NCBI RefSeq assembly: GCF_021869535.1
Contig: NW_026262690.1
Span: forward strand, 2,542,001-2,606,000
Length of the DNA stretch: 64,000 nt
Direction of reading: 5' to 3'
Origin: Mytilus californianus
Taxonomy: Eukaryota
Below, in pieces: positions 23,769-50,303 of this stretch. Under the pieces are notes generated by a model that saw nothing but the letters and a program-made list of their open reading frames with translations, made no database searches and had not been told where the DNA came from. A program made the translations under genes and the position numbers. Every line of letters begins with the position of its first letter. Position 1 is the first letter of the stretch.

Positions 23769-26700
23769 CTACGGTTTAACTGTTGGTATTACTTCCTCAT
23801 ATTCCTCTCCTGATTCATTTTTTTCACCTTCAAGTTTTAAATATAAGTGTGTTTGACCTGGATGTTCTACTGGCTTTTCGTAGCCTAGAACTTCTAGCTC
23901 TTGGACATTCTGATAAACGCTAGCTTCTGTATTTCCACTTTTATCAGTGCTGTTTATTACACGTTGTTTTATATTAACATCTTCATATTCCTTCTGTCCT
24001 TCATTACTGTATAAACTGCCTGTATGTTTATCTGTTTGGTCGTCAGCCATCGCCACATACTCCATTTGAGGTCCGACGTCATGAATATTGCTCTCGCCTT
24101 CCATTGGAATGTACTCTGCGTCATATGTATTATCTGATCTCACTCTATCCGTCTCGTTTTGATAAATAGTACTTGTATCTAATGGTTTCTCTTCATCAAT
24201 ATTACAACTGCTTTGCTTAGTTTGTTCATAATGGTTGGGCTTTGATTTCTGTCCAGTTTTGAAAACATCTTTGCTGGTGCCCTTTATCTCTTCACTTGTA
24301 AGAGCTTCATGAGATGGAATGGGGTCAAATTTTCGTTTATGAAATCTGCAATTTAATTGTACAACATGATAACAAATATAAGAATGATTATACCAAAACT
24401 ATATCTTCGTGAAAGATAGAATAAGAATAAGAATGTTTATTGTTCCAATGAAGGGCCCTTGATAGGAAGCATGGAATTTACACACACACAACAATACACC
24501 TTTATTTTGTAAAACTTAAGATATGCCTTTGGTAATATACATGTAGGTAATTTCACACGGATCTGGTACCCTAATACTAAATATTCAAAAAGAAATGAAT
24601 TTGCTTTATTGTAATAATTACACTTCTCAGTAAAAGTCTCTTTTTTTCACTGATCAAGCCGTTGATTTTTTTCTCGTTTGAATTGCTTCACATATTTTCA
24701 TGTCGGGGCCCGTTTAACTGACTACACGATATGGGTTTTGTTCATTGTTTAATGCCATACGGTGACCTATAGCTGCTTGTGCACGTCATTTGGTCTCTAG
24801 TGGAGAGTTGTCTCATTTGCAATCATACCACACCTCCTTATTTTTATATTTATTTAGTTTTTTTCCATATTGTTAAATGGCCATTTTGAACTGTGGTATT
24901 ACTTCGGTCCCTTCTTGCATTGTTTGCAGACTCTTTCGCTACGCCTGTATCATCTGAAGTGACGGTAAGAGTTCCAATCACGAAATTTAATTATTAGGTT
25001 AGGAATTTCGTTATCAGAAATTTCTAAAAACCTTTACTAAATAGTTTCTAAGATACAAAGATTTAGTTTGGACGTTTGCTTGTACATGGACCTACAGATT
25101 TTACGAAGATGTTATAATTCTATTTTGACAATACAAATGTCATTTTAAAAATAAGGAGATGTGGTATGACTGTCAATAAATCGACTATCGAACAATAGAC
25201 CTAAGTACATAAGTGAAAATAGCTATATGACACCGTTCGGCTTTAAAAAACAAAGACTTACTGTAGAGTAAATAAAAAAAAATGATAACAAAATATGAAA
25301 CGAAACAGAAAAAAAAACTATTGTCGTAATTTAAACTAAAATCAAACGTAAATAGATATAAGCAGATGTGGTATGAGTGCCAATGAGACAACTCTCCATC
25401 CAAGTCAAAATTTATAAAAGTAAACCATTATATGTCAAAGTACGGTCTTTAACACGGAGCATTGGCTCACACCGAACAGCAAGCTTTAAAGGGCCCTAAA
25501 AATTACTAGTGTAAAACCATTCAAACGAGAAACCCAACGGTCTAATCTATATAAAAAACGAGAAACGAGAAACACTTATGAACCACATCAACAAACGATA
25601 ACTACTGAACATCAGATTCCTGACTTAGGACAGGTGCAAACAATTGCAGCGGGTTTAAACGGTACCAAACCTTCACCCTTATCTGAAACAATAGTGTAAC
25701 ATCACAACATAGAAGGACACACTATAAAATATCAATTGAAATGGCTTAACTCAATCAAAAGACATATTAACACCAGTAAACATACACTGAACAAATAAAT
25801 TTGATCTATGATACAATGTAAATACAAAATAAATAAACTAAGGGAAGAATAATTAAAGTAACATGTTATACCGCTGTGAAATGTTAAACAATTTAAGAAA
25901 AACTATATGCTTGAACAAAAATATCAGCCATTTGCAATTACTTCAAACACAGGTAAATGAAAATAGTTTTGTTGTTAGGTATACGTGTACAGTTCAAATG
26001 GAGAAAGGAAATATTTCTACAAAATGAATAATTTTGATGTTCATAGTACGAAGAAGTGAAAATTTATAGTAATACTCAACACTTATCAAAGCTGGTATAT
26101 AGACCAGATATAACTCTGAATAACATTAAATAACAATAAAGCATTACAATTAGTATCAAAAGGTCAAATAAACAAGAAAGTACGATTTGAGAGTACTCGC
26201 AGTTACTGACAGCTAGTTAAAAGCCAAAAATAATTAATAATAAAAAATCATGCATCAGAGACTAAAATCAACTAAAACACATCCCAGGGATTTAGTATTT
26301 TAGCGTCATGGACAGTAAATGAAGACATGACTTGTGCAATGCCAAAAATAAATGTATCGACAGGCAGTAGGATAGTTAGGAGTTAAATTCTTTATAGATC
26401 AAAATGAACGTGAGTGTGTCTTTATACATCCCGTTTGAAAAGAATACAAATTTAGTTATGTTTTAATTTGCTGATGACAAAATCGATATAAGTGCCAATG
26501 TAAACTATATTCAAAGATCTAATCACAACGTTGGTAAGATAACCTTTACTAATAAGTTTGTTTAAAGGTTCGATGAGTTTACACGGATCACATAGGGATT
26601 TCCGCGCTTTAAGTACAATATTACCGTAAAATTAAACGTAACTCCTTATTTCTACTTATTTTTATGTAAAAGCTTGATTTCTTCTTATGAATCATATTTC

Positions 26701-29700
26701 ATTAAATTTTCCCAATTGTTTTTGCAGGCGGGCTGAATAAATAGATCCCAACACTACTCTAACCCCTTACATGTGTATACCTTTTACAGATGATTATTGC
26801 CACGGTTATTATAATAACCATGACAACCAAGACACTTCCTGCCACTGCTGCTACTAATGTGACTGAAAATGTAATAACAGTAAGATATAATCAACCTTCT
26901 TTCTACAAATGAATGTTATTTCATCGACATAGAACAAATCAAAATATTTATTGCATATGAATCACGTTTAAGATTTTATTGAAGACTACAAAAATATAAA
27001 ATTGAAACAACTTCTCTTTGTGAAAACAAGCACTCCAAAATTTAATAGGGAAAATGAAAAGTTACACTTTAACCTTTCGGTAAGGAAATATTTATTCTAT
27101 ATTTTATTTTTATTGTTTATTGTTCTTGGTTTTTGTGTATAAGCCAATTTCTGAAAGTGACTAGCTGTCCAGCCTAAATTAGAGGTTAACACACATCATA
27201 ACTATACGACTAATCACAAAAAAAAACAGAGTGAAAATGTAAATGGCATTAATTGTAGTTTCTCTAACATTTTCCTGGTTAAATATATGATTATAAAAAT
27301 AAGAACATGTGGTATGATTGCCAACGAGACAACTATCCACTAGAGACCAAATGACATAGAAGTTAACAACTATAGGTGACCGTTGCTCGTTTTACCTCCC
27401 TAAATGTATTACAATAGATATAAGAAGATGTGGTATGAGTGCCATGAGACAACTCTCCATCCAAGTCAAAATTTATAAAAGTAAATCATTATAGGTCAAA
27501 GTACGGTCTTCAACACGGAGCCTTGGCTCACACCGAACAGCAAGCTATAAAGGGCCCCAAAAATTACTAGTGTAAAACCATTCAAACGAGAAAACCAACG
27601 GTCTAATCTATATAAAAAACGAGAAACGAGAAACACTCATGAACCACATCAACAAACGACAACTACTGAACATCAGATTCCTGACTTAGGACAGGTGCAA
27701 ACAAATGCAGCGGGTTTAAACGTTTTAATGGTACCAAACCTTCACCCTTTTTCTGAAACAATAGTGTAACATCACACAACATAGAAAGACACACTGTGTA
27801 TAATTTGGAGTTTAGTATGACGTTCATTATCACTGAACTAGTATACATATTTGTTTAGGGGCCAGCTGAAGGACGCCGTCGGGTGCGGGAGTTTCTCGCT
27901 GCATTGAAGACCCATTGGTGGCCTTCGGCTGTTGTCTGCTCTATGGTCGGGTTGTTGTCTCTTTGACACATTCCCCATTTCCATTCTCAATTTTACACTA
28001 TAAAATATCAACTGAAATAGCTTAACTCAATCAAAGGACATATTAACACCAGTGAACATACACTGAACAAATAAATTTGACCTATGATACAATGTAAATA
28101 CAAAATAAATAAACTAAGGGAAGAATAATAAAAGTAACATGTTATACCGCTATGAAATGTTAAACAATTTAAGAAAAACAATATGCTCGAACAAAAATAT
28201 CAGCCATTTGCAATTACTTTAAACACAGGTAAATGAAAATAATTGTGTTGTTAGGTATACGTGTACAGTTCAAATAGAGAAAGGAAATATTTTTAAAAGA
28301 CTGCCTAGTCTAACATTAATAAAACACGAAAATTGGGTCCTCCTGCCTCAACTACACGGTCTTTATATAGCATCTCTAAATAAATATAATCCTTTTCGAA
28401 AATTATATCTACTATTGTATATTTTTTAATTGTATTTATTTAAAAAAAAAAAGTAAAAGAAAATACCGAACTCCAAGGTAAATTAAGAAAAAGGAAAGTC
28501 CATAAAATCTGACAAAATCAAATGTTGGATTATATCAACCAACGGAACGAATGGAAAACAACTATCTTTTTCCTAAATTGAAAAGGCATTTTCCGAAGAA
28601 ACGCCCTTAAGGAGTATCTAATACTTCTTTTTTCTTTATTGTTTTACATAGTTTGGTCTTGTGTCTTGTGCCGTTACACTACTGTCCCAGGTTAGTGGAA
28701 GGGTTGGTGCCTTCAAACATGCTTAACCCCGCCACATTCTTTATGTGCCTGTCCCAAGTCAGGAGCCTGTAGTTCATATAATTACTTACATCCACTTCAT
28801 TTGAACTTTGGTGGATAGTTGTCTCATTGGCAATCATACCACATCTCCTTATTTTTATAGAGTAGGAGATTCCTGTCATGTTTACATACAACCATGAAAT
28901 TAGTTTGGACACATTTCGGTATGTTGTCATTGTCCATTTTTTGTGAAAAAAAAATTGTTGAGTTTGTCAGGCAAAATTGATTTTGCAAGTATAATATGTA
29001 ATACAACTTCCTTAACATGTTCAACTTTCATACTTCAGTTGATTATTTAATCCATAAAGTTTTACTTACTGTTTACAGCGTATGTAGCATTGCTGTCTGT
29101 AAAGAATAGTAAAAGAATAGAATTATATACACCCAAAGAATATTTAAAATTTTTTTTTTGCGAAATTAATAACAATACGAAAGCTGCTTATTTTGTCGAT
29201 GTTTATACGCTTATCCCTAAAAGTAATCCACTAATTAAGTTGTATATCTTAGATAAAATTGAGAATGGAAATGGGGAATGTGTCAAAGAGACAACAACCC
29301 GACCATAGAACAGACAACAGCAGAAGGTCACCAACAGGTCTTCAATGTAGCGAGAAATTCCCGCACCCGGAGGCGTCCTTCAGAGCATGCATTCCTTATT
29401 ACATGTAACTATCACTAACTTAACTTCAAAGGGTAATATAAATTCTGTTTCTTTTTTGTTTTTGTTCGATTTATTAACAACTTTTATAGAGCTTGACATT
29501 TTGTGTGGACACCTGTGTAATGGTGGACTGCATGTTACCATAAAGAGTTCGTTTGGAATTATTGTTGTTGGGTTACTGTCTCATTAACGTTATACCAAAC
29601 TTTTTTTCAATTCCACCTGCATCTGAAATCATTTTACTTTTGGTCTTTGAGGATTTGCCTTTTCAGAATATATTATGTATTATCTGGGTGATATTTTTAA

Positions 29701-32700
29701 GTGTCAAAAATCAAACTTCCAATGAAGGTGATAGATTGATCTCTCGCTTGTGTGAAACTCATTTCCTTTCATACATTGAAAACTTAAGTATGTTCTAACA
29801 CTCATATCTTAATTAACTTTAGAAATAATTAAGGTTGATATGAAGGTTGAATATTGTGTTGCATAATTGCTGAAGTAATTGTCCATGATTCTATATAACA
29901 AGTACACATACCGTCTGGAACTATACTATACATTGACACAAATGTTGTATTTTGACCCCCGCATGTTTCATTTCCGTTTCCTGGACAAGGAGAATTACAG
30001 AGTGTCCCGTTGATTTCGGTTTGTGGCGGTTGTTTACTGCAGCTGCAAGTAGCAACAGGATGTGAGTCCATAACCCCTCCGTCTATCTGACCCTTTGACA
30101 CAATAAATTTAAACAAATATAAGTGTCCTCTTTTTTTTTGTCATATTTTTATTAAGTTGAGTTAACAGTAAATAAAATGATAGAATGACCTGAAATTACT
30201 CCCTTTACATATCACATTTGGAGAGATAGATAATACTGTGTTACTTTCCTGTTGCCATTCTGATTTGATGCATTTCATGTGAAAAGAGCAGAAAGTAACA
30301 ACTAAATGTACTATACTCAAATGTCGTAGTATCATATTGACCGACTGAGGTGCGTATGGTGACCAGTAATTTTTCACATCTATGTCCTTTTCTCTTTGAT
30401 AAAAAGTTGTCTCTTTGGCAATAATACCACATCTCCTGATTTTTAAACTAACAATTATTACTGCGAACAATTTATACATGACTTGATCAGACATTTTCAT
30501 TATGAAAAGAAAAAAAAAGAAAAAAATTATAACAGAGATGATGAGTCGGATTTTTAGCGTGAAAGCTCACAATGTAAGTGTCAAGTGTAAATATCATACT
30601 CAAACACATTATTCCGAGACGACTCATCCTTGCTTTGATTTCGAATGCGGCTTGCGCTTGGCAAAAACAACGAATAAAAGTAAAAAAGTCAGAAGTATGT
30701 TCCAGCCAGATATCGAACCCACGACCCCTATCCCGCATTCGAGGCAAACACGCTTCCCAGGAATAGATTACCTTAGATGTATTTTGCAAAACTTTTCGGA
30801 ATTTATTATAAGGTCCTCAATGCTCTTCAACTTCATACTGTATTTGGTCTTTTTAACTTGTTTTATTCGAGCGTCACTCATGAGTCTTTTGTAGACAAAA
30901 CGCGCATCTGGCATACCAAATTATGATAATATAAAAAAAGAAGTGGTGGTATCGTTGTCCATGAGACAACTCTCCACCTGAGACCAAATGAAGTAGAAGG
31001 TTAATAACTATAGGTCACCGTGCGGCCTTCAACAATGACTCAATGAGCAAAACCTATACCGCATAGAAAGCTATAAAAGGCTCCGAAGTGACATATGTAA
31101 AACAATTTAAACGAGAAAACTAACGGACTGGTGTATGAACAAAACAATAAACGAAAAAAACAAACATGAAATACAGTAACAAACAACAATTTATAACTGA
31201 GTTACAAGCTCCGGACTTGGGACAGGCACATGCAGAATGCGGCGGGATGAAAAGTGTTTGCAGGCGCACTAACCCTTCCCCTAATCTGGAACAGTTGTGT
31301 AAGATTACAACATAAGAACAACCTATAAAAACCAGTTAAAAAGGGCTTAACTCATCAGATCAATACAAAGCACAAAAGCAACTAATAAAATCACAAGACA
31401 CAAATTAAAGATCTGAGAAGTTACAGAAAGCTACTTCAAAGCCACTTACAACTAATAAAAAATATCATGTATCTAAGACTAAAATATCAATCAGTTCACA
31501 TCCAACTCCTAATGGATTTAATGTAAAGACATAATTAGCAGTCTAAGAAAAACATGATCTTTTGAATCTCTTAAGCCTAGTATCTTTGATGTGTTTATTT
31601 CCACGAGACCCCATGCTGATGCTTTTGATATTATACAGACAATATAGTATGTTAATGAAGATCGTAAGTTGACCTCCAAATTTCGTTTTATTTTTGTGTC
31701 GTTTTTTGCTGTCTCTTTTGACGTATACCTACATTTCCATTTATAAATTTATACCTTGAACTATATGGATGTGGTGGGGATCTTCATAGACAATAGATAG
31801 AGAGAAGCAATGAAGCCGATTTAAATAGAATAACCTACCGAAGTTGCTATCCAGGTGTAGTGTCGCTCATCACAAAATTTAGAACACATTTCAATCGACA
31901 TATAGTTACTGCTGAAGGATTTGTCCGAATCGAAACCCGTATAGCATCCATGAAACAGGAACAGTAAACCTGGAGTAAAAAATTAAAAAAAAAATCATTT
32001 TTTAATTGTATAGTATTTTGAACAGATATATCATTTTCAGGAAGGGTTTTGAAAAAATACCGGTACTAGTAGAGAGGAAGCCAAATATTTGGATTTAGCC
32101 TTTAATCGAAGGAAATTTCTCTTCAAGACTGGTATTTTTGCCAGTACCCTCCTAAACATGATATATATCTGTTAATTACACCAATAGAGATGGTAAAGTG
32201 AAACATTTTATTTATGATTCCATCATTCTTTCGCTTCAAGTCGTTATTTATCAAAGACAACCACATTGATAAAACACACAAATGACCAAGCATCTCCGTG
32301 ACGGGTAAAAAAAGCATAAATGTATTGTCAAATACCCATACTTAGAGGGTAAAAAAGTCACATCTTTGTGCATATATCCCGGCGAAGGTGAAATATATAC
32401 AATATTCAACGTATAGAAAGACCCAAAGTCTCTAATAGGTATAATTCTAAGCAAGTTATCCTACCAATCAGTTTATTTGGAATAATTGTGACGTTGATAC
32501 AAAGTGTGAACTTGAAAGCGACATATCCTTATACTCTTATCGGAGGCAAATTTTGTCAAAGTTTGAAAAAAAAGAATAATAATCAGAAAAAATACAGTTA
32601 GGTTTTTACGTTTTGGAAAAGGAAAGACCTTAATTTAAAAACAACTACATTGTCAATATACTTGTAAAGGTTTTTCAATATATACAGTATCTTATAAAAT

Positions 32701-34077
32701 TGTAGGTTATGTTTCGATTGTCAATTTGCTTATAAAACACTACCTAAATGTATATTTCATTGTTAAACAAGAAAACACGAAGCAACCGAAACGGTAACAG
32801 AATCCGCCTCTTTCCTATTATCGCCTAGAATGCGAGGAAAAGTTACTTCTTCCTCTCAACCTAGATTAGCGGTTGACGGCCGACTCCCACCCGTACCGTG
32901 ACACCTCTCTACATTAATTTACTTAGTAGTACATGGCTGGAAAGTTGGATATACTACTTGCCTCCGGTACATTGTACATGAATGTAACATATATTCTTTA
33001 AATTATACTCGTCCTACCGAATATATATACATTGTGAATATACACTTTTCACACACTCGCCCACTTTTAAAAAATATATATAACCACTTAAAGAAACTGC
33101 AAACTCCTCCCGCCTACGATATGATATGATATATAGTATATTGTTTTATACTAGTACTTTTCCATTACTCTCCTACTAATTATAAACCCACTTATAAAAT
33201 TTGCCGGCCGATGTTGCCGGGATTAAAAAATGATTACTGCACTTATATTGAGGAATATTGTCCCTCGTAGTATATATCATATTGCACCTGCAGGCTCGTG
33301 CAATGTGATATATTGCTCGTAGTTGCATAGGAGTAGACTGAAAAGGGGGTAAAACTTCTGAAAAAGAACAAGCAAACAAAAATCTATAGGCTACAAGTTA
33401 GCAGTGCTCTCTGTCATTTTCATTTTTTGCTTTCAGTATTTGTTTTCCAGGAAAGTAACCGGGGCAACTGCCTCCCTTCCCCCGCCAGCTCCTATCCACC
33501 TGGCTCGGGACAATATTCCTCAACATCATAACCCTAAAGTTTCTACACATTTGTACTTTTTTTCTGGATATTTGATTTGATTAACATAGGGAAGTTTGAA
33601 AAAAAGGTAGCATATATCATTTTTCCGATATAACATACAGTTCGTTATGCTCTAGTTAAATGCAAAATTTCATTCAAATTTGTGTAATAGGTCATTAACG
33701 TACCTATAGAAATAAACAGTCTATATATTTGTTTTCATAAATTATAATATTCTTTATTTTATAAAAGATTGTTTGTAAACATAAATCAAATCAGATTCAT
33801 ATGATTGTATAAAGTTTCCGTTGGTGTAAGTATTGTATTATCACCATATATTTTTTACAACAATGGTAGTAACTTTCTTTTTGAGTTGACATTTTTCCTA
33901 TCATCAAAACCAAAAGCCCGACATAAAGGCAATTATACAACGTAGTCTGGGTTTTAACATTTGAGAGACTGTAGAAAAGCATATAGGGGAATTCTTTTTC
34001 TGTTTGCTCAATAATTTAAACAACTCTAAAAGAAAAAGCAGTGACCCCGCCTGCAGGAATCTCTTTGTAAAGGGGAC

Positions 34078-34117
<40 letters not shown>

Positions 34118-34922
34118 GCATTGCTAAACGCACAATGACAAATATTTCATGCATATTCAGGACGAGAAAAAATCTCATAGGTAATTTCTGCAAAGTTGGT
34201 TGACCGTGATGAAAAGTGGGGATTTGGACTGCCACTGGAAAATGAGGGTATGTTGGATATCGGAAGGAATGTGGTCTTGCAAAAGGCCACCTACGGAGAT
34301 CCCTCAAAGAGTTGTTGCAATGGTTCTTACATGTGCGCAGAGAGCGTGGCACTCGCCATACACGAAACATTGGATTAAACGTTTCCATATTCCGACCGGA
34401 CGTGGCTGTGTATTCATACATCCTGCACAGACAAACAGACGCCTTTCATTAGCACGATTTTTATGAGTAGATTGGAGGATTCCAGTAATGACCATATTTC
34501 TATACCTAAACCAACCTTTGTGGTTGTAAAGGGGTAGTACCAGATGATATCATTATTTTCGGCGACTACAGTCATAAGGGGTAACACCCAATTTACTTTA
34601 TATTTTTTTTCTTTTAAACTGAAAGTGACAATACCATGGAGTTTTATTGTGCGTTAAGCAAAGCAACAATCAATCAATCAATCAGTCCCCTTTACAAATG
34701 AGGTTCCTGCAGGCGGGGTAACTGCTTTTTCTTTTGGATTTGCTTAAATTATTGAGCAAACAATGAGAGAATTCCCCTATATGCTTTTATGAGGGGTTGT
34801 TGTTTTATATTTAATATTAAACGACATGAACTCTAAAGATTGACATCCCTATACTCACATTTTGACTGTCCGGTGTAAAAAATCAATAATATCAAAGCAA
34901 CAACATAAAAATTCCTTTCCAT
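23769..34922 (-). CDS. WSC-domain type-I transmembrane receptor A with tyrosine-motif-rich tail (~344 aa; ~353 aa if the micro-exon is used)
   Basis: Exons: 34859-34922 (MERNFYVVALILLIFYTGQSK, AT|gtgagt); 31839-31969 (FHGCY..MSIEMCSKFC); 29912-30092 (CSCS..LCNSPCPGNGNETCGG); optional 29596-29622; 26781-26862 (TM LVAAVAGSVLVVMVIIITVAIII); 23769-24345 (tail, 11 Tyr). All junctions are GT-AG with compatible phases 1,0,1,2; total 1035 nt is divisible by 3. Confidence 0.85.
25353..26016 (+). mobile_element. Young dispersed repeat (class unresolved, MITE- or HINE-like), copy 1 of 4
   Basis: Near-identical copies at 27415-28292, 57924-58570 and 62403-62687 (gatgtggtatgagtgccaatgagacaactctccatccaagtc...). 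Confidence 0.85.
27415..28292 (+). mobile_element. Same young repeat, copy 2, carrying a nested ~200-bp insertion (~27797-27995) bounded by an ACACT duplication
   Basis: Comparison with uninterrupted copies (gacacactataaaat) shows ACACT on both sides of the insert. Confidence 0.8.
33248..33523. mobile_element. MITE-like element with perfect 17-bp TIR (TTGAGGAATATTGTCCC)
   Basis: 33248-33264 is the exact reverse complement of 33507-33523. Confidence 0.75.
33975..34788. repeat. Fold-back structure: ~150-bp inverted arms (33975-34136 and 34646-34788) containing (GATT)n, enclosing a SINE-like core
   Basis: The arms align as reverse complements (aaaagcatataggggaattc..ccccgcctgcaggaa..gtaaaggggactgattgatt). 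The core resembles copies at ~56780-57160 (+) and ~58870-59060 (-). Confidence 0.85.
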
Positions 34923-37762: not shown

Positions 37763-37879
37763 CCAGAGTATACTATAACAAATGATTATATCACTACAAT
37801 ATAATAGTTATAACGGTGAGGTTGAATTCCTTGTCATTTATTCATCATCCACACAGGAACTTATCTCAGAAAAAATATA

Positions 37880-39200: not shown

Positions 39201-39346
39201 TAATACAAATGCTCCAGAAAACCTATTAAGGGAAAATAAAAATAAATTTAATTTTCCAAGATGGCGGACAATGGCAGCAAATTAAAATTGTCTAATATTT
39301 GTTGTTGGTCGTAAAAACGTCTCTCAGGGAAGAATTATGTACAACG

Positions 39347-40420
39347 TTATTTATAAACATTGTTTGTGCATATGTTCACTAAAATTATGTGCTTAAACAG
39401 TAAAATTGTCCTACAAATCTTCGCTCTTCTTTTCAACTTTTGTCTTCCTGTCTTCAAAGCCTCACGTTCACGCAAGATGCACTCACAAACTTTATATAAT
39501 AGTCCGAAAAGAAAACATGTGTTTACTCCAATAATAAAATACAGAAACAACACAAATTCCCAAATATTTGTTTCGGGATAAACATTGGTAGAATGCTTAG
39601 GTTTCGATAGATCACTGAATTTTGTGGACAGTTTCCTCAGCAGAATATTGACATTCTGATCAGCTTTGAATGTGCAAAACTCTCTAAACGAATATACGGA
39701 AGCTTTATTTTGAATTCGGTAAGACTACGAAACATTGACCTTTTCTTTTGAATAAAATACATTTAAGGCAAAGTACCACAAAGATAAAAAGTAAAATCCT
39801 TTTTTTTTCAGTTTTCGCCATTTCAAGGACGTAAGTAAATTTAAATAAAGGTACACATAAACTATATACCAACCAATCCCGATAGCATAGTAAACAAAAA
39901 CAATGGTTTCCTTTTCGTAAGTTTTTAATTTTGTCCAAAGAAGTAACTTCCTGATTAATTCATATCACGAATTATTTCCGTTGTTCGTTTTATCTGTACA
40001 CTTGCTAGTACAGTGTACTTTTAATTTGTTCCTTGTCGTTTCTGTACATTTGTCTCGTTTCTTTTGATTTGTCTCTTTTTCTTTCTGTAGATTTGTGTCG
40101 TTGCATTTGATTTGTCTCTTTTTCTTTCTGTAGATTTGATACGTTGCTTTTGATTTGTCTCTTTTTCTTTCTGTAGATTTGTGTCGTTGCTTTTGATTTG
40201 TCTCTTTTTCTTTTTGTAGATTTGTGTCGTTGCTTTTGATTTGTTTCTTTTTCTTTCTCTAGATTTGTGTCGTTGCTTTTGATTTGTCTCTTTTTCTTTC
40301 TGTAGATTTGTGTCGTTGCTTTTGATTTGTCCGTTGTGGTTTCTGTAGATTTGTGTCGTTGCTTTTGATTTGTCCGTTGTGGTTTCTGTACATTTGTGTC
40401 GTTGCTTTTGATTTGTCCGT
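39347..40420 (-). pseudogene. Decayed intronless ORF: K/R/Q/T-rich repeat N-terminus followed by three hydrophobic segments
   Basis: A single frame over ~358 codons with only three internal stops (40261, 39967, 39727). Hydrophobic runs: TIVFVYYAIGIGWYIVYVYLYLNLL, GFYFLSLWYFALNVFY and IWEFVLFLYFIIGVNTCFLFGLLY. Confidence 0.6.
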
Positions 40421-40435
40421 TTATTCTTTTCTCTA
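40035..40435. repeat. 43-bp minisatellite (TTCTGTAGATTTGTGTCGTTGCTTTTGATTTGTCTCTTTTTCT)n, ~9 copies
   Basis: Period of 43 measured (40085, 40128, 40171; 40343, 40386). Confidence 0.9.
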
Positions 40436-40931
40436 GATTTCGATTCCTTATTTACTTAGCTGGGTTACCGTTTTTCTACCCGCTATTCAAACATATTTTT
40501 GATTTTTCTTTTTTACTATCCTTTTGATTGACATTTTGGGGAATATAATTTGAAGAGTTTCAATTTAGAAATTCCAAAGAATTACAATGGCAAATAATCT
40601 AAGCACAGCACTTTCTTATTTACCCACACGTCGTACTTCTTTTATATAATATTCCTTTTAGTTATATAGAATGAATCAACCTGGCTTTGACAGATGATGA
40701 ATGTTACAGAAAAGATTTTTGTTCCTGTGCAGACAACTTAAATAAACCATAGTTCGTATTAGAAACTATTGCATCTAATATATTTAATGTTCATTGCAGC
40801 TGTTATATAGTTCCTATTTGTCTGATTGTGGTATATTGTATCACATAAGGTTTCCGAAGTTGCTACTTATTAATACTCTATATTTCTTCCGATTAAATCG
40901 TTGTTGCTCATTTCTCTTTTTTTTTCAATGC

Positions 40932-43900
40932 TTACTGTGGCATCATAAATTCATATTCTTCCTCTGTGTTTTCAAGGACTTGTGTTTCACTTTTTATGGT
41001 ATCTTCTTCCGAGTCGGCATTAAGCGTTGAATACAAATGTGGTGCGCTTTCTGTTCTCGTCGGAATTTCGTATTCTTCAGATTTATGTTCATCAATATTG
41101 TAATAAAGCTCATCATTAGCATTTGCCTTTTGATTTAATTTTTTTTCGACTGTGTCAGAGTCTGCATTAATATTCATATATTTTTCGATACTTTTATTTC
41201 TATATATATTTCTGACAGCTCTGTCCCTCTCGATTTCCTCAACAGTTTCGTATTTGGCGTCGTCTTGGCCATAAGTGTTATTCTTCATCCCTGATTCATT
41301 AGTACATATGTTGATCGACTGTTCATTATTACTTTTGTCCTTATAGACAACAGTCTCATAAAGTTCTCTTTCGCTGATATTACTATTACTATGATCTGTG
41401 TGGACATAATAGTTAAGCGTTCCTTTACTTTCTGATTTCATGTCACGTGACTTTATGTCATTGTTTTTGTCTAATACTAAACTCTTACATTTAAGGTTAG
41501 ATGTTGTCGTAAAAGAACGTGTTTGATATCTGAAAGAAATAAGAAAACGAAGAAAACAGTAGTACAGACCAAGGACTGACAACAAATATGGTACTGAAAC
41601 AGAATTTCCTCCTCATTGCTATACCTATTTATTTTATCCATCTGTTCGTATCTTTTGAAATTTATATAAGCCAGCCCAGTAGCCAGTATTTCGGTACTGG
41701 CATGAAAAAAACGGATATTGTATTATTTAAATTTGCTGTAACAAAATTTGGAAATTATTTCAAATTCAGAAATATATCTCCCTCATGCAATGCCCGGCTT
41801 TGGCTATACTTTTGGTCTTTTTAGGTTTATAAGCCCATTAATTTTTTTAAATAAATTATGGGTTTTCAAATATTTTGGCCTCCAGCATCACTAAAGAAAC
41901 ATTTAATGTCGAAATGTGCATCTGGTGGAGAGAAAAATTGGTAAGGTTAATGTTATTACTACCACTGGGTCAATAACTCTGCTGGTGGACTGTTAGTCCA
42001 AGGGTGTTACATCAGCCCATGAGCCAGTACTTCGGTTATGACATGAAAAAAACGGATATTGTGTAATGAAAATTTGTTGTAACAAAATTTTGAAAATTAT
42101 TTTAAATTCATGACTATATCTCCCTCATACAAACTCGGATTCTTTGTCCAACTTTGGCTATACTTTTGGTCTTTTAAAGTTTATAAGCTCTTTATTTTTT
42201 TAATAAGTTTTGGATTTTAAATATTTTGGCCTCGAGCATCACTGAAAAGACATTTATTGTCGAAATGCACGTCTGGTGCAGAAAAATTTGTACCGTTAAT
42301 GCTGTTATACGTTACATTTATAAACGTTTTATATTGCATGTTGAAAGGTTCTGTGTAGTTAGACCATTAAGGAATATTTAGATAACAGATGTCAAATATG
42401 TGTTTGATATTGTTTTTGATTATTTTTTATTTCCTTTTTCAAAGCCTAAATTTGTACCAGTTTGAAAGTTTTCTCATATTGTGTGATGTAAAGGAATCTC
42501 TTTTAATATTCTTCAAGGGGTGAAATTTTGCCCTTTTTTCTTATATGATATATTATAATATTAATCTATTAATTTTGCCAGTTTGCAACTTTGCGGTAAC
42601 AGATAACCCAAGTTTCTGTGACATCCCTGCACTGTGACCATTAAGGCATATGTGTTAACTCCCCCTACACTGTGTCCAGTGACCTAGACCAGTGTTCGAG
42701 CGATTACTTATCAATATTTAATAACCTCATATAATGTTTTCTTACCTTCTGTAAAGAATCAGAATAACAACGGTTATCACCATGACACCAATAACTGCAA
42801 AGACTGCTCCTACCACTATACCTATCGTATTGCATGAAGTAAAGACGATGACTTCGATGTTAATTTATTGTTCATAATATATATATATGATATTTTCCTA
42901 TTTGTGAAAAACTGTGTATGAAGCTTATATGCTCAGCACATATACATTAAAATCAACAGCTCAAGGAAAATTGACAAAGCATTTTAGAGAATATTTTTTT
43001 TTGGTAAACTATGAAAGAATTGCCATCTTTTGATGAAGCCTACAATACTATTCAAAAACGTTTCCCTTCAATATATTAATAGGCAGTATATATATCAAAC
43101 AATATTTTATATATTCTAAGAAAGGCTATTATTGCTTTTGGTTAATTGTTTTGTACATAAATCAGGCCGCTAGTTTTTCGTTTGAATTGTTTAATATGTG
43201 TAATTTCGTGGCCTTTTAAAGCTTACTATACTCTATGTGTTTTATTCATTGTTGAAGGCTGTGCGGTGATCTAGTATTATTGCTGTACGGTGATCTAGTA
43301 TAATTGATAACTTCTACGTCATTTAGTCTCCGGTGGAGAGTTGTCTCATTGGCAAAATACGATATCTTCTTATTGTTATATCCAAGAACTGACAGTATGT
43401 TTTTTCTTTGAGTTAAGCAGGATTTTTTCATGTGTAGTAATATATATATTCCATGTTTTACTAACAGGGTCAGAATCTAAGTTTTAAATCCTACTTAAAA
43501 TTGAATATTTAAGAATATATATCATACATCAAAAAGTCGATTTTTTTTTCATTTCTGAAAAATCTTATTGAAAATGGCCCTGATAGAGTTAAGGAAAATT
43601 GGACCTGTCTCTTTCAGGAAAAATTCGTAAAACTTATTTATTGGCCCTTTTGTGAAATAAATTCATGGAAAATTCTCCCTTTCTCTACATCATAAATTTT
43701 ACGTTATCGAGAAAGTGTATATTATAAGTGGGAGGTTAGGCTAGCTATAAAACCAGGTTTAAATTACTAGTATCATTTTTTTCGGGAAATGTCTGTTCTA
43801 AGTCAGGAATATGACAGTTGTTTTCCATTCGTTCCCTTGGGTGATAAAGTCTAACGTTTGATTTTGTCAGTTTTTATGGACTTTGCCATTTTTAAATTTA

Positions 43901-46900
43901 CCTTGTAATTCGATATTTTTGTCATACTATTTTTCCGTGTATACTTATAAACAGGATATTATAATTAAACATGACATCACTTACGATCATTATTTCCTGT
44001 GTTCTTGTAACCTATAAAACATATATTTATAATGGTAATATTTCCATTTACACTGTATACTCTACTTTTCACATTACACAAAACAGAAATTTTCTTCAAT
44101 TAACTTTGATATGAAAACAAAAACAGCCTCCAAAAACACAAGTTACTTTAAAGCAAATGATGTCAGTAATGTGTATACTTTAATGCTTGAACATCCACAT
44201 TTCGGACAAAAAATAGGATGAAAATAAAAAATAAATATCTGTTGTAAAAAGATAACACCTATATGCTTATCTACGACCCAGCTTCAGTTCCACTTGTTCA
44301 TCTTAACTAAGAGTTGAACTGTTCTAGTTTCGGTATATGCTTTTGATTTGTGTCAAACATTCTGCAGATATGTTGATTACAAGATAGTAAGAAAAAAGGT
44401 GTCCAAAAGCTATATATTCAAATGTCATTGTACAAATAGTGTTTGGGAAATACCCAAAAAAACCACCGCCTTCATATACGTACATACCACGCATAGCCAC
44501 ACCATGAACAGAGTAAATTGTTTGGTTGTAGCCACCGCATATTTCATCCGGGCTTTTTGGACATGGAAAATTACACAAGCTTTCATTCACTTTATTCATA
44601 AGAGTTTCATTACTACAGCTACAAATGCCATGTGCCTCATAAGCATTTGTCAGAAAAAGTGCGCCAGTTATCTTGACCTTGAATTAAGAAAAAAAACAGA
44701 TAAGTAATATGTTATGAAGTAATATTGAAACAAATCAATTTTTATATTTGTTATACAATGTATCTGTTACAGGTTCAAACCTAGATTTTAAGGAGATAAA
44801 ATCATATGTAAGACATTTGCTTATACCAGCAATAAAAATGACTATACTGAACTTTTATTATATATAGCTTTAACATATTTTAAATTAAATTTAGAATAGG
44901 ATAAAAAGACATGAGAGGTTCTCTTGTGGCATATATCAAAGATTCTTACACAATTATATAGTGCAGAAAACATTTATCTTTCAACAAGTCACGAATATTT
45001 ATGAAACGAACACAAAATTAATTTCATGATATTGAAATTTAATAACTTTACGATATTAAGAATTGTGATAAAATCGTTTAATTGGTAAACGATAACTTAC
45101 AGACAACGCAGCTAGGCTATAGTGACCTACTTTACAAAATTCTATACAGATGGAACTGGACATAAATGTTTTATTCACATACGAGGTATTTACTTCAACA
45201 TTCAGATAACATCCATAGTACCTAAAACTTGATCCTGTTAAAAAAATAAAACAAAAAAGCAAAACATTATTTGTTCCATTCGCAGCAATTTTATACTACA
45301 CTTTATTTTTCATTGTTAGAGATGATATTGTGAACTATAAAGTAATTTATATACAATTACGTTGTTTTATTCTTACGCTCTGTGGTTTCGTTTTATTACC
45401 GATTCGCCTTATATTATGTACTAATTGCAATGGGTCAAATGTTTCATTGTTTGCTGCTTTTCCCACACCCATTAACGATATGCACTGTTCATATCGTTGC
45501 AGTAGTTTTATGAATGAATGTGGTCCTGTCAATAAATGCTACAAATAGCCTTTTTATACTAGTGGGCCATAATATATGTTATAATATTTTGGATAGTGAT
45601 GAAAATCACGGGTGGTGCGATACTTTTTCCAGGTGTATATAAGATGTAATTTTCACTAAAACTGTAAGTTTACAAATTGAATGTGTTATCCTCTGGTATA
45701 ACCATATTATATTTTTCTATACCTTTTGTAATCTTATGGTCAACGTAAAAGATTGGCATAGGCTTACAAAAGAAGTTAACCTCGCTATATATTAATGAAC
45801 ATGTCAGAAAATCTGTAGTTTTTGTTTTGTCTTTTCTTAATATTTTTTGGTCATTATTATACTAAAAATAAAAAGCAAGGTGTATTCAAATAACTACAAA
45901 AAAAATGATGATTTGTAAAAAGTAAAATAAAAAGAATACCGAACTCCAAGGAAAATTCAAAACAGAAAAGTCCCTGTTCAAATGGCAAAATCAAAAGCTG
46001 AAACACATCAAACGAATGGAAAACAACTGTCACCCGACCCGGCGCAGGCATTTCCCTACGCAGAAAATTGTGGATTAAATCTGGCCAATCCCCTCACTTG
46101 TATGACAGCATAAAATTCCATTATATTGACAACAATGTGTGAACAAAACAAACAGACATAATAGGTAAAAATGTCATAAATATGTACAGCAGTCCACATT
46201 GTTATAATGTTAATCACTTAGTCTATAAAACAAAGAAATATGCCAACAAAGAAAACAAAATGGCATATAGACAAAGCACATAGCAAAAATGAAAGACAGA
46301 AATACAAAAAATGACCATAGCACAATAACACAATGACGGGACCGTATAAGAACCGAGCCATGCCAAAGGATATTACCAAAATAGGACTAAACAGTAAAGG
46401 TTAATTATTTACAAAGACGAATAAAAGAACACTATAACACGTAATTAAGATGATAAACAATCTATACACCAAGACCATCATGTATTATTTGTGAAGTTAA
46501 TGCGGAATATTTATCTACAAGGTCTTGGTTTTTTCCGATGAACTTTTTTAGAAAAAGGACGAGACGTTCTTTGACATGACCCTAGTTCATCAACTCTCTG
46601 CTCAGATACTGGTGGCGTTTTATAAAGTCTGAGTAGCAGCTGAAAGCTCTTGGATACCGAATAAGTTGGGAAATGTATATCCCATATGCAGGTGAAATTG
46701 GTATATTGCTACTAAGGTGAGAGAAATTGATAATTTCAAAATTAAAATCGTCTCGTTTGTCATAGATTCTGGTACTGAGACGACCGCGTATGTCAAATTC
46801 GAGGTATAAGTCTTAAAATGTGGCGGAGGAAGCCGTGTTTGTTATTTCTTTAATTTCTAGTTCTAGAGGATATATTAATGGAACCCAATCAGAAAAGTTT

Positions 46901-49900
46901 GGATTGTTAATGGAAAGAACATCATCAATATAACTGAATGTGAAAATTAAATGAGCTGGCTTCTTTGATCTTCTTGTTTTTGACAAATGTTTGAGGGAAC
47001 TCCGACTCATATTAGCAAAAGAAGAGGTCGGAAAGAAGAAGCAAACAGTTCGTTCCCATAGGAATGCCGACAATTTGTTGAAAAAGTCTACCTCAAAATT
47101 CAACAAACATGCTGTCAATAAGAAACTCCTGCATACTGATCACTTGTTCCTCTGTGTAGCATGGTTTACCTTTTTGTTCACTATTAACAAAATATGCAGT
47201 ATGGTATCTCAAAGTAATAAATTTATAGTGTGTGCTACCATTTTTATATAGAAAAGCATTGTGGATTATTTCTTTTCTGATTGAGTTCCATTAATATATC
47301 CCCCAGAACTAGAAATTAACGAAACAACAGACACGGTCCTCCGCCTCATTTTTAGATTTATACCTCGAATTTGACATACACAGTCATCTCAGTACCAGAA
47401 TCTATGACAAACGAGACGATTTTAATTTTGAAATTATCAATTTCCCCCACCTTAGTAGAAATATATAAACTTCACATGCATATGGGATATACATTTCACA
47501 ACTTATTCGGTTTTCAAGAGCTTGCAGCTCCTACTCAGACTTTGTAAAACGTCACCAGTGTCTGAGCAGAAAGTTGATGAACCAGGGGTATGTCAAAGAA
47601 CGTCTCGTCCTTTTTCTAAAACGTTCATCGGAAGGTACTAAGACCTTGTTGATATATATTCCGTATCAACTTAACAAATAATACACGATGGTCTTGAAGT
47701 ATAAATTCTGCGTACTGACGTTGTTTATCATCTTAACAACGTGTTATAGTATTCTTTTATTTGTCTTTATTAATATCACTTTTAGTGTTAAGTCTGTTTT
47801 TTGTGATATCCATTTGACGTGACTCTGTACTTATGTATCCCGTCATACTTTGAACGACAAAATTATTTTATATCTACCTGTGTGACGTCAAACGTGCGAT
47901 TCTACGCCAGCACTTAAAACCTTTCATCCTTTATGGGTGGATTTTACATAGATAAATAAAATCGTATAATAAAAAAGCAAAATGAGGATGTTAAAAAATT
48001 TAAAACAACACGGTTAATAATTTCATGCGTCCGAAGCGCTTTTCTGGATTTACCTTCATCAGGAATGCTCAAAGGTCAACTTTGCCTGCGGGAGTTGAAA
48101 CCTTAGTTTCTTTATAATTTCAAAATTTATAAACAGTCGATTTTAGAAAGGTTTGTTATAAATCATGTCAGTACCAAAGTACTGACTACTGAGCTGATGA
48201 TACCCTCGGGGACTGATAGTCCACCAGCAGAGGTATCGACCCAGTGATGTAAAAAATTGAAAACAACACGTTTAATAATTTCATGCGTCCGAAGCGCTTT
48301 TCTGGATTTACCTTCATCAGGAACGCTCAAGCCAAACATTTGAAATCCGAGGGATGTATAAGTACCGAAACAGTTGAAGAGCTATATGACAAAAATACAT
48401 AAAACAAATAGCCAAATTCATCTAAGGTCAACTTTGCCTGAGGGAGTTGAAAACTTGAGTTTCTTTATAATTTCAAAATTTATAAACAGTCAATTTTAGA
48501 AAGGTTTGTTATAAATCATGTCAGTACCAAAGTACTGACTACTGAGCTGATGATACCCTCGGGGACTGATAGTCCACCAGCAGAGGTATCGACCCAGTGA
48601 TGTAAAAAAATTGAAAACAAAACGTTTAATAATTTCATGCGTCCGAAGCGCTTTTCTGGATTTGATGTATGCCTTTTTGTGCTTCTTTGTTACATTTGTT
48701 TGTTTTTATAGTGATTAAGATGATAACACAATTTTGACTGCTGTACCCCTATTTTTGACATTTTTAATTATTGTGTCTGTTTGTTTTGTTCATGCATCGT
48801 TGTCAATATAATGGAATTCGACGCGACTGTCATACAAGTGAGAGGTTTAGCTAGCTATAAAACCAGGTTCAATCCACCATTTTCTACATAAGAAAATGCC
48901 TGTACCAAGTCAGGAATATGACAGTTGTTATCCATTCGTTTGATGTGTTTGAGCTTTTGATTTTGCCATTTGATTAGGGACTTTCCTTTTGAATTTTCCT
49001 CGGAGTTCAGTATTTTCATGATTTTACTTTTTAGACGATTTTTCAATTTTACATGGGGAATGGTGGTATACAGTGTTGAAAAATCAAAAGTTTTGATAGA
49101 ATTAATTTCAGAGAAAGATCGAGATTTCAAATTATCAATAAGTTCTTAAGTGGTTTTTTTAGAATCCACATATTGTAAATACTACTACGCGAGTAAACAG
49201 TTTCACGGTATTTTTGAAGACCCTCTTTCAATGCGGCCAGATTGTTGGTCAATCTAATGGACAATTCCTTTGTAGAACATGCAAATGAGCAGACAATGTA
49301 TCGTTGTTTGCACGGAATTTTGTGACGCTTAGGTATCCAATACAAACAAGGTAAGTCCTCAGATTTGCTGTTCAATGTAATGTTCATTGAAGCCATGAAG
49401 GACTTATGATTGCCAAAATCTCATCTTTGTCAAATGATATATTTTTGCGATTATGTGGGATTACCTGAGTGCTCATTTATTCCTAATTCTTTTACAAGCC
49501 ACTCGTAGTCGTACGATTTAAATACAAAGATAATATTATTTGAAGCTTTATCCGCAGGAACAACACCATATTTATCGCGAAGAGATGATAGACATTTCAC
49601 AGCTTCTTTGTTCCTGAAAACGGACTTTGGTCGATCGTTCACAGTTTTTCAACTTATGAATTCGACGTTTGTAAGATATCCCGAGAATAATTGCATCATA
49701 GCACGCAAATGTTTAAACTTTGTTTTCATTCATTATTGTCAAACTGCCTAGAACAAAATGAACCAGACACAAAACAAATCAAACAAAATGAGATTGAAAA
49801 TCCCACTCAACACAAAATCCTAAATGCGACACCGAGTCATGAATTGCATGTGATCACTACCTGGGATCAACGAGAAAGTAATAAAGACCTAAATATTTAG

Positions 49901-50303
49901 ATTGGAAGAAGAGGCTTGTGTATGTTTATGATCCACCAATGTTATTCAATTTGATTAAAGTTAAGGGGGCAACCATTTAACTTCAAGAGGGGGGGGGGGG
50001 GTTATGTTTTTTGTATGTGTCAGAAATTTTTTTCTTAGTTTTTCGACGCTATCAATCAAATTATTTTTTTTCAAAATTTAACGCTATAAGGTATGGGGAA
50101 AATCTGGATTCAGAATATTTTATTTTTGTCATCTGCTTGACCACAATATTTTTTTCATCGAATTGGTGATCAGATTATTTTTTTAGGGAAAACCATAACA
50201 CCCCCCACATACTATACAAAGTAGTGTAAATCTATCCAGTCTTACCTTGTAAGGAAATTACACAACACAAGTATAACGTACACAATGTGTAGATGAAAGT
50301 CAT
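40932..50303 (-). CDS. WSC-domain type-I transmembrane receptor B with tyrosine-motif-rich tail (~351 aa; ~360 aa with the micro-exon)
   Basis: Exons: 50246-50303 (MTFIYTLCTLYLCCVISLQ, AG|gtaaga); 45101-45234 (YYGCY..MSSSICIEFC); 44488-44677 (CSCS..ESLCNFPCPKSPDEICGG); 43985-44011 (27-nt, tag|..|gtaagt); 42746-42821 (TM IVVGAVFAVIGVMVITVVILILY); 40932-41529 (tail, 14 Tyr). Intron phases are the same as in receptor A. Confidence 0.88.
46430..47135 (-). mobile_element. Penelope-like retroelement RT, 3' part (decayed)
   Basis: GIPMGTN, FTFSYIDDVLSINN (YIDD catalytic motif) and the downstream IYDKRDDFNF-type segment. Confidence 0.85.
47265..47860 (+). mobile_element. Second Penelope-like RT 3' fragment, inverted relative to 46430-47135
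   Basis: LDLYLEFD..STRIYDKRDDFNFEIINFPHLS..YGIYISQL..RACSSYSDFVKRHQCLSRKL. Confidence 0.85.
48001..48665. repeat. Tandem duplication of a dispersed repeat (gcgtccgaagcgcttttctggatttaccttcatcagg family)
   Basis: The motif recurs at 48027, 48286 and 48639; family members also at ~52725, ~54830, ~63370-63560 and ~21550-21720. Confidence 0.8.
49035..49690 (-). mobile_element. Penelope-like RT, 5' part (decayed)
   Basis: DKYGVVPADKASNNIIFV, LYWIPK.HK, MWILK and IKTFDFSTLYTTIPH motifs across frameshifted ORFs. Confidence 0.85.

Follow-up and report, generated by a model that had tools for sequence, protein, structure and literature searches.

The window analyzed here, a stretch of 64,000 nucleotides from the genome of Mytilus californianus, contains two adjoining tandem paralogues on the minus strand, genes A and B, that are real and lie where the original prediction placed them, with the stop codon of gene A at positions 23769-23771 and the ATG of gene B at 50303. 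Both encode the architecture that had been proposed, comprising a signal-like N-terminus, a single WSC domain, a linker of about 10 to 20 amino acids, a transmembrane (TM) helix, and a tail that is acidic and about 190 to 200 amino acids long. On balance, we lean toward viewing the products of genes A and B as type-I single-pass, non-catalytic, tyrosine-phosphorylated receptors of about 355 amino acids. The "tandem family" suggested earlier shrinks to a pair, given that the 1.65-Gb genome has just two such genes.

Gene models and transcripts

Every exon boundary in the two rebuilt gene models is a canonical AG...GT, and the entry phases 0,1,0,1,1,2 are the same in gene A and gene B, so that the prediction of two complete genes with identical intron phases holds for six exons each (Table 1). 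In both genes, the WSC domain is cut into two exons by a phase-0 intron, and each gene includes a mini-exon of 27 nt; a first five-exon model that joined the WSC domain directly to the TM segment was replaced after these mini-exons had been found. The TM exons were located via a hydropathy scan, and the signal-like segments were judged by eye.

Table 1. Genes A and B and their exons in window coordinates.
Feature	Position	Strand	Content
Gene A	34922-23769	-	353 aa, 6 exons
Gene A exon 1	34859..34922	-	ATG and hydrophobic, signal-like segment MERNFYVVALILLIFYTGQSK; exit phase 1 with donor AAT/gtgagt
Gene A exon 2	31839..31969	-	N-terminal WSC half with 3 Cys, phase 1 to 0; matches positions 1-47 of the Pfam WSC model at 23.2 bits
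Gene A exon 3	29912..30092	-	C-terminal WSC half with 5 Cys and 3 N-glycosylation sequons, phase 0 to 1; matches positions 49-82 of the Pfam WSC model at 19.9 bits
Gene A exon 4 (mini-exon)	29070..29096	-	27 nt, D-SNATYAVN-I, NAT sequon, phase 1 to 1
Gene A exon 5	26781..26862	-	TM helix TLVAAVAGSVLVVMVIIITVAIIICK, phase 1 to 2; hydropathy 3.14
Gene A exon 6	23769..24345	-	Acidic cytoplasmic tail of 191 aa, 11 Tyr, and stop codon
Gene B	50303-40932	-	360 aa, 6 exons
Gene B exon 1	50246..50303	-	ATG and signal-like segment MTFIYTLCTLYLCCVISLQ; donor AAG/gtaaga, phase 1
Gene B exon 2	45101..45234	-	N-terminal WSC half; Pfam WSC 19.0 bits, model positions 1-45; junction seen in L002/L003
Gene B exon 3	44488..44677	-	C-terminal WSC half; Pfam WSC 22.1 bits, model positions 44-82; transcript junctions match
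Gene B exon 4 (mini-exon)	43985..44011	-	27 nt, G-YKNTGNND-R, phase 1 to 1; flanked by tatag and gtaagt; present in L002/L003
Gene B exon 5	42746..42821	-	TM helix, hydropathy 3.07; predicted exon start
Gene B exon 6	40932..41529	-	Acidic cytoplasmic tail of 198 aa, 14 Tyr, and stop codon

The M. edulis protein P0003 maps to every exon of gene A, with 86% identity between exon 1 and the first 22 residues of this orthologue and 81% identity for exon 2. A candidate first exon of gene A at 39821 was dropped for the one at 34922 because of the orthologue evidence. The gene A mini-exon is homologous to an M. edulis mini-exon (DSNHKDTIN) with conserved flanking cag and gtaagt; it is present in P0002 and P0003, missing from P0005, and probably skipped in some isoforms. 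Exon 6 is 100% identical to M. californianus LOC127737285, the RefSeq model of gene A (P0001), which is truncated to 205 aa and begins at a Met within exon 5.

For gene B, exon 1 matches the N-termini of the RefSeq orthologues P0071 and P0073, and the anticipated spliced transcripts exist in the form of contigs L002 and L003, which align to the gene in six blocks whose junctions coincide with the predicted bases (L002 spans the exon 1 junction). This transcript support is that of a congener, and a congener transcript also extends the 3′ UTR of gene B to about 40685. The orthologues in M. edulis, M. galloprovincialis, M. coruscus, and M. trossulus, all of them uncharacterized, agree with the gene models, and the tandem order B-A with its LRR neighbors is kept in M. 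edulis. Secreted LRR proteins are encoded on both sides of the gene pair.

The description of these genes as largely invisible to ORF calling is fair, with long ORFs covering the tail exons only; the ORF fragments within intron 1 of gene B and an ORF at 34029-34445 gave no Pfam match. Both are small genes whose tiny exons are set among long introns full of repeats.

The ancestral exon-5 acceptor of gene B at 42833 reads cat/GC in the window versus cag/GC in M. edulis (compared with L001 and L002), and a new AG, arising from a change of ATTGG to ATAGG, lies exactly 12 nt downstream in frame; we infer the exon-5 start from this loss and gain. It is because of the mutated acceptor that gene B is the main suspect for the view that one or both copies are relics, i.e., non-functional, unexpressed, or mis-spliced. 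This view could also draw on the truncated RefSeq model of gene A and on the lack of an M. californianus gene B protein in a collection of 5.8 billion proteins (nor was a gene B entry found for this species in RefSeq), but missed annotation is expected for genes with such tiny exons and long, repeat-filled introns. Moreover, 12 of 12 exons are open and in phase, the new AG preserves the gene B frame, and dN/dS is below 1, which makes it very unlikely in our judgment that either gene is a relic.

A divergent WSC domain as the ectodomain

The ectodomain of genes A and B is a divergent WSC domain with borderline Pfam scores, the sole family match for this part in Pfam searches of the exons and the full-length orthologues. 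The predicted match to WSC (PF01822) was obtained with each exon half by itself: scored separately, the halves reach 19 to 23 bits, and they adjoin and slightly overlap on the model, with summed scores above the Pfam gathering cut-off of 27.8 bits. Full-length orthologues score 22.2 to 29.7 bits with full model coverage, and P0009 alone exceeds the cut-off; the lower scores are due to an insertion of 10 to 14 aa that the WSC domain of the mussel proteins carries at the position of the intron. When we looked for the WSC signature (C-x-C ... C-x-x-P-C ... C-G-G), all 8 cysteines were present in both genes, with exon 2 contributing 3 and exon 3 contributing 5, and they align with those of diverse WSC domains, the invariant CGG included.

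An AF2 model of the ectodomain of a gene B orthologue (pLDDT 80.3) has WSC domains as its only significant Foldseek matches, namely those of Wsc1 (7PZ2), glyoxal oxidase (9N3U), and Kremen (5FWS), with a Foldseek probability of 1.00 for seven matches that are all WSC (7PZ2, 9N3U, and 5FWS-5FWV). Most ectodomain exons show dN/dS values of 0.09 to 0.6. The original prediction was also right about the absence of kringle, CUB, and kinase domains and of a Ser/Thr stalk, as seen from Pfam searches of the exons and full-length orthologues and from the length of the WSC-TM linker, which consists of the end of exon 3 and the 9-codon mini-exon. Judging from the fold, the WSC heads probably bind glycan.

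Tyrosine-rich cytoplasmic tails

Neither tail exon has a Pfam match, and no kinase domain was found in them, even at E values up to 10, or in the orthologues. With about 20% Asp+Glu, no Trp, and net charges of -18 (gene A, inside the Uversky disordered zone) and -15 (gene B), the tails lie in the charge-hydropathy disordered zone and are probably disordered. A full-length AF2 run of P0003 with a 5-sequence alignment (mean pLDDT 33, with the TM helix alone confident) says nothing on tail disorder because even the WSC part came out unfolded.

The tails of A and B are about 23% identical. When the ORFs of gene B were compared with gene A by tblastn within the window, the alignments covered the WSC exons alone (about 33% identity) and not the tails; that the tails are "unalignable" was ruled out by BLASTP of full-length orthologues, which aligns them over their full length (E = 2e-36). 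Across three paralogue groups, 6 of the 7 aligned tyrosines are invariant versus 15 of the 117 remaining columns (P = 7.6e-5, hypergeometric test), with invariant flanking residues that form the contexts YxN (N at +2), YExP (E at +1, P at +3), and HLYxxL. Each tail carries 2 to 4 YxN motifs, a single YxxP, and one or more YxxM, and most tail tyrosines are preceded by acidic residues. A canonical ITAM (YxxL/I x6-12 YxxL/I) occurs in no tail, and single matches to the ITIM ([SIVL]xYxx[IVL]) are sporadic, found in some sequences only, with a -2 residue that is not conserved. Values of dN/dS of 0.35 for gene A (versus M. edulis) and 0.47 for gene B (versus L002) indicate that the tails are under purifying selection. 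As far as sequence can tell, these tails, which are kinase-less and have conserved tyrosines in SH2-ligand contexts, fit non-catalytic tyrosine-phosphorylated receptors or transmembrane SH2-docking scaffolds, and their use as SH2-docking sites is plausible. The M. californianus genome contains at least 41 SH2-domain exons.

Such a receptor would consist of a cleavable-looking signal segment, one divergent WSC domain (PAN/apple-like, with four disulfides), a short N-glycosylated linker, a TM helix, and an acidic tail without an enzymatic domain. A ligand would cluster the WSC heads, upon which cytoplasmic Src- or Syk-type kinases would phosphorylate the conserved tail tyrosines, and the phosphotyrosines would then recruit SH2 proteins. 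By motif, candidate partners are of the Grb2/Drk type (YxN), the Crk type (YExP), the p85 type (YxxM), and the Src type (YEEV/YEDV). We infer tail phosphorylation, the identity of these partners, and an immune or environmental-sensing role for genes A and B.

The same tyrosines could instead serve sorting, with a WSC domain that captures a glycan ligand and YxxPhi motifs and acidic clusters that bind AP-2/AP-1 for uptake or trafficking rather than for phosphotyrosine signaling. The tails are indeed rich in acidic residues and have 4 to 7 YxxPhi matches each, and V, I, L, or M stands at +3 of 4 of the 6 invariant tyrosines. However, AP-2 does not read the invariant N of YxN (+2) or the invariant P of YExP (+3), the NxYxxT site, also invariant, lacks a hydrophobic residue at +3, and one or two motifs usually suffice for sorting while six conserved tyrosines over 150 residues are generally typical of docking scaffolds; we therefore consider an endocytic or sorting receptor rather unlikely. 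Less probable still seems a protein for surface adhesion or matrix anchoring, or a decoy, with a tail that plays no part in signaling and tyrosines that are kept by another constraint, e.g., a cytoskeletal or lineage-specific partner. It would agree with a tail that has no recognizable domain and with fast-evolving genes of one genus (gene A orthologues of M. californianus and M. edulis are about 75% identical), but the tyrosines and flanking motif residues are selectively kept in tails that are otherwise down to 23% identity, and tail dN/dS is below 0.5.

Within the reading as phosphotyrosine receptors, we entertain as a tentative idea a Mytilus-specific "lectin-headed LAT", in which a WSC glycan sensor with its own multi-site scaffold would build, with no need for a co-receptor, a signalosome of the Grb2, Crk, and PI3K type and may act together with the flanking secreted LRR proteins.

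Distribution, precedents, and significance

Genes A and B are a Mytilus-restricted pair, with one further tail type (P0010/L004) beyond the Mytilus entries. In a profile search of 1.84 billion representatives, tail matches were confined to Mytilus, P0010, and P0050, and all other matches covered the WSC part or the TM region except for the weak P0054 (E = 3.4e-4), which has no WSC domain. A DNA search with L004, the third tail type, against the M. californianus genome gave a single short match of 77%. An ESM Atlas search for look-alikes returned one weak mollusc cluster (0.81) and no lead, and the literature on WSC in Mytilus or bivalves yielded expression-list mentions only. Of the suggestion that this may be an undescribed receptor family, one part stands, since no orthology to a characterized receptor was found and all orthologues are uncharacterized; the other part does not, since the proteins are already public (labeled "uncharacterized" or "WSC domain-containing") and this kind of receptor has precedents.

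Fungal Wsc1-3 resemble the mussel pair in being type-I proteins that cross the membrane once, with a single 8-Cys WSC domain at the N-terminus and a cytoplasmic tail without enzymatic function after the TM helix, and among known structures S. cerevisiae Wsc1 (7PZ2) matches the mussel ectodomain model best (TM-score 0.64/0.71). In the fungal Wsc sensors, a long O-mannosylated Ser/Thr stalk lies between WSC and TM, and signaling runs via Rom2/Rho1, whereas the mussel proteins have their short linker instead of the stalk and a Tyr-rich acidic tail; no homology of the mussel tails to fungal Wsc tails was detected in the profile search. Kremen1/2 are animal single-pass receptors with a WSC domain (5FWS matches the mussel model with an rmsd of 2.6 A) but are built as kringle-WSC-CUB, and neither kringle nor CUB is present in the mussel proteins or their orthologues. 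The Logan transcript product P0049 (WSC-FN3-TM-tyrosine kinase) is likewise a WSC-headed single-pass receptor tied to phosphotyrosine signaling, but it contains two modules of the FN3 type plus a kinase domain of its own, both of which the mussel pair lacks. The transmembrane adaptors LAT, NTAL, and PAG are similar in that they lack a catalytic domain and have a disordered acidic tail in which YxN and related SH2-docking motifs occur several times, and they are palmitoylated and have almost no ectodomain. Unlike these, the mussel proteins have a folded WSC head, and there is no sequence homology.

A lectin-type head combined with a kinase-less tyrosine-motif tail is already known from two invertebrate systems, i.e., amphioxus BbLcLRR, which has a WSC domain within its ectodomain and three tail tyrosines that are phosphorylated by the Src-family kinase Lck and recruit the SH2 phosphatases SHIP1 and SHP1/2 (PMC8211107), and oyster CgCLec-TM1 and CgCLec-HTM, whose hemITAM-type tails bind the Syk SH2 domain and drive ERK and IL-17 (reviewed in PMC13027682). 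Likened by description, BbLcLRR and the mussel pair are both kinase-less with WSC in the ectodomain, but the former has a mainly LRR ectodomain with the WSC domain embedded and three ITIM-like tyrosines, whereas the mussel tails have no conserved ITIM. If the pair acts with the secreted LRR proteins, the LRR+WSC ectodomain that is fused in the inhibitory receptor BbLcLRR would be rebuilt as separate chains. The oyster receptors share with the mussel pair the bivalve host, a carbohydrate-binding-type head, a single TM segment, and a kinase-less tail, but they differ in their C-type lectin head and a single hemITAM or non-classical ITAM, compared to WSC and six conserved tyrosines in the mussel.

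Our work provides corrected gene models for a locus at which the M. californianus annotation truncates gene A and appears to miss gene B, and it illustrates how 27-nt mini-exons and split domains conceal such genes in ORF-based scans. Bivalves, which have no adaptive immunity, depend on glycan-binding receptors in large sets that evolve fast. To our knowledge, the path from glycan binding to an intracellular signal is known for few bivalve receptors, e.g., the Syk-coupled oyster C-type lectins. If our favored reading is true, a receptor that pairs a WSC head with six conserved docking tyrosines would bring a second lectin fold into this bivalve scheme, and proteins of about 355 aa would offer a compact, testable model for the origin of kinase-less phosphotyrosine receptors in a lineage.

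Gene models and transcripts

The window is AT-rich (GC ~33%), and its minus strand holds two long Tyr/Asp/Glu-rich and two pairs of short Cys-rich stop-to-stop ORFs, with one strong transmembrane (TM) segment per gene between the WSC and tail exons in a hydropathy scan. First exons were sought as hydrophobic exons that open with ATG and close at a phase-1 GT donor, and they were located for both genes, that of gene B starting at the very base at which the original prediction had ended the locus. All exon boundaries show AG...GT, frame continuity of the final models was verified by phase arithmetic, and the entry phases (0,1,0,1,1,2) agree between the genes just as predicted.

RefSeq P0001 ([quoted passage not shown]) matches the gene A tail exon without a difference, and this tail also retrieved M. 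coruscus, M. edulis, and M. trossulus orthologues. LOC127737285 (205 aa) begins at a Met within the TM exon, so that its entire ectodomain is missing. The M. edulis orthologue P0003 (360 aa, N-terminus MERNCYVVALLLLFFYTGQSKC) aligns to all gene A exons in the window, which settles exon 1. For gene B, no M. californianus protein was found in the protein collection searched; its N-terminus (MTFIF...) is common to RefSeq M. galloprovincialis and M. edulis proteins (362 aa, "uncharacterized"), and its tail retrieved proteins from Logan assemblies; the contigs of these proteins represent spliced congener transcripts (L002, 1452 nt; L003, 1278 nt). These align to the window in six blocks ending at the predicted bases of gene B (~91–96% identity for exons 2–6, ~84% for exon 1) and exposed a 27-nt mini-exon between the WSC and TM exons. 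Its gene A homologue was located by alignment to the M. edulis locus, with the preceding cag and the following gtaagt intact. The two complete genes of five to six exons originally proposed are thereby upheld as complete and refined to six exons each, mini-exon included.

At the TM exon of gene B, the M. edulis acceptor reads ttcag followed by GCAATACTATTGG, and the same place in the window reads ttcat followed by GCAATACGATAGG. The ancestral AG is lost (cag/GC to cat/GC), and 12 nt downstream a T-to-A substitution yields another AG, which preserves the frame with the loss of four residues (NTIG); this new AG is probably the acceptor used in vivo. In the tails, dN/dS is 0.35 (gene A, M. californianus versus M. 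edulis) and 0.47 (gene B, window versus L002), and for most ectodomain exons it lies within 0.09–0.6, which indicates purifying selection on fast-evolving genes, and we regard it as very improbable that the copies in this genome are non-functional. Two tandem arrays flank gene B, and short open frames in series within its intron 1, one with a YIDD-like motif, look like a decayed retroelement, with no Pfam match at E ≤ 0.01.

Coordinates of features in the window
Feature	Position	Strand	Remarks
Gene A model	34922-34859, 31969-31839, 30092-29912, 29096-29070, 26862-26781, 24345-23769	-	353 aa; mini-exon is fourth
Gene B model	50303-50246, 45234-45101, 44677-44488, 44011-43985, 42821-42746, 41529-40932	-	360 aa; mini-exon is fourth
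Tyr/Asp/Glu-rich ORFs	23772-24398, 40935-41612	-	stop-to-stop
TM segments	26762-26890, 42745-42864		gene A, gene B
Gene B TM-exon acceptor	42821-42833	-	
LRR ORFs	1830-3347 (-), 14756-16135 (+), 60165-61547 (-)		single-exon, 459-505 aa; LRR_8 72-128 bits; either side of WSC pair
Tandem array	40018-40440		43-bp unit, 9.8 copies; ~500 bp 3' of gene B stop codon
Tandem array	51173-51489		31-bp unit, 10.1 copies; ~900 bp upstream of gene B exon 1
Intron 1 open frames	46585-47139, 48858-49648	-	gene B

WSC ectodomain

All four Cys-rich ORFs match Pfam WSC as half domains, bearing out the predicted WSC head (gene A, 23.2 bits over model 1-47 and 19.9 bits over 49-82; gene B, 19.0 bits over 1-45 and 22.1 bits over 44-82). 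Full-length orthologues cover the whole model at 22.2–29.7 bits (cut-off 27.8), and the scores are low because the Mytilus proteins carry a 10–14 residue insertion precisely at the WSC intron position. Alignment to 17 diverse WSC domains shows each of the eight cysteines, and also the CGG motif, at its expected position. Confident Foldseek matches of an AF2 model of a gene B orthologue ectodomain (pLDDT 80.3) are WSC domains only (yeast Wsc1 7PZ2, Fusarium glyoxal oxidase 9N3U, and Kremen 5FWS-5FWV). As originally stated, kringle, CUB, and stalk are absent from exons (Pfam), full-length orthologues, and models. Each ectodomain has 4–5 N-glycosylation sequons. This genome abounds in WSC exons, of which at least 150 were scored; the majority are split near model position 45/46, the split position in genes A and B. 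Dense tandem arrays of them lie around C110:88147018-88291824 (~88.15–88.29 Mb), and WSC exons also lie on other contigs.

Tyrosine-rich tails

No Pfam family was found in the tails, in exons or orthologues. They are acidic (Asp+Glu ~20%, Tyr 5.5–7.5%, no Trp; net charge -18 for gene A and -15 for gene B), and both fall within the Uversky disordered zone. Orthologues of the two genes can be aligned along their whole length (28% identity, E = 2e-36). In an alignment of nine sequences from three paralogue groups, between-group tail identity is ~23%. There, 6/7 aligned tyrosines are invariant versus 15/117 other columns (P = 7.6e-5), and invariant neighbours set the motifs N-x-Y-x-x-T, Y-x-N (N invariant at two sites), Y-E-x-P, H-L-Y-x-x-L, and E-Y-E. 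Each tail contains 2–4 YxN motifs, a single YxxP, and one or more YxxM; a canonical ITAM or a conserved ITIM occurs in none of them, which sets the pair apart from classical ITAM/ITIM receptors by their defining feature.

Known SH2 ligand classes include YxN (Grb2), YxxP (Crk), YxxM (PI3K p85), and YEEV-like motifs (Src). The conserved tail contexts fit these classes, and the M. californianus genome contains SH2-domain exons. On balance, we favour the tails as putative phosphotyrosine docking sites. Four of the six invariant tyrosine sites also fit YxxPhi, but sorting through such motifs seems unlikely because the specificity residues of the SH2 contexts are conserved too, beyond the tyrosines alone. 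A non-signalling surface protein would be a distinctly improbable reading.

A gene pair among known receptors

A profile of five full-length orthologues, searched in six frames against the whole genome (1.65 Gb, 175 contigs; window at C110:2542001-2606000), matched exons of genes A and B only, apart from a weak WSC exon at another locus. A search of 1.84 billion representative proteins with this profile yielded 59 matches at E ≤ 0.001, with the tail covered only in Mytilus proteins and in P0010 and P0050. The latter two form a third tail type. On its genomic contig, L004, the tail is again preceded by a phase-2 intron; the M. californianus genome lacks this type, and P0010 as query matched only the gene A and gene B tails there. 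P0010 (183 aa; L004:413-964, sample SRR23320469) carries the same invariant tyrosine motifs as Mytilus tails. A weak match, P0054 (551 aa, E = 3.4e-4), aligns to profile 84-268 via TM region and acidic tail and has no WSC domain. Within this genome, the "tandem family" originally proposed thus shrinks to two genes. The pair predates the Mytilus radiation, since several species carry both paralogues and their B-A order is kept in M. edulis, where LRR genes likewise follow the pair (L001).

The original reading as an undescribed receptor family is borne out in part. No paper on these proteins was found in the literature searched; they already have database entries (as uncharacterised or "WSC domain-containing"), and their receptor kind, a lectin-type head with a kinase-less tyrosine tail, is familiar. 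In oyster, CgCLec-TM1 and CgCLec-HTM link a C-type lectin head via hemITAM-type tails to Syk (PMC13027682), and amphioxus BbLcLRR has a WSC domain within its ectodomain and three tail tyrosines phosphorylated by Lck, recruiting SHIP1 and SHP1/2 (PMC8211107). BbLcLRR, the one characterised phosphotyrosine receptor known to contain WSC, joins LRR and WSC in a single chain; separate LRR genes flank the mussel pair. The pair also differs from fungal Wsc sensors (defined by their stalk), from Kremen (kringle and CUB), and from RTKs (kinase domain); one Logan transcript, P0049 (727 aa), encodes an RTK with a WSC head (WSC, FN3, PTPR-type FN3, TM, tyrosine kinase). Overall, the two proteins are built as small type-I receptors, each joining a lectin-type head to a kinase-less multi-tyrosine tail, and this layout is confined to one genus and two genes.
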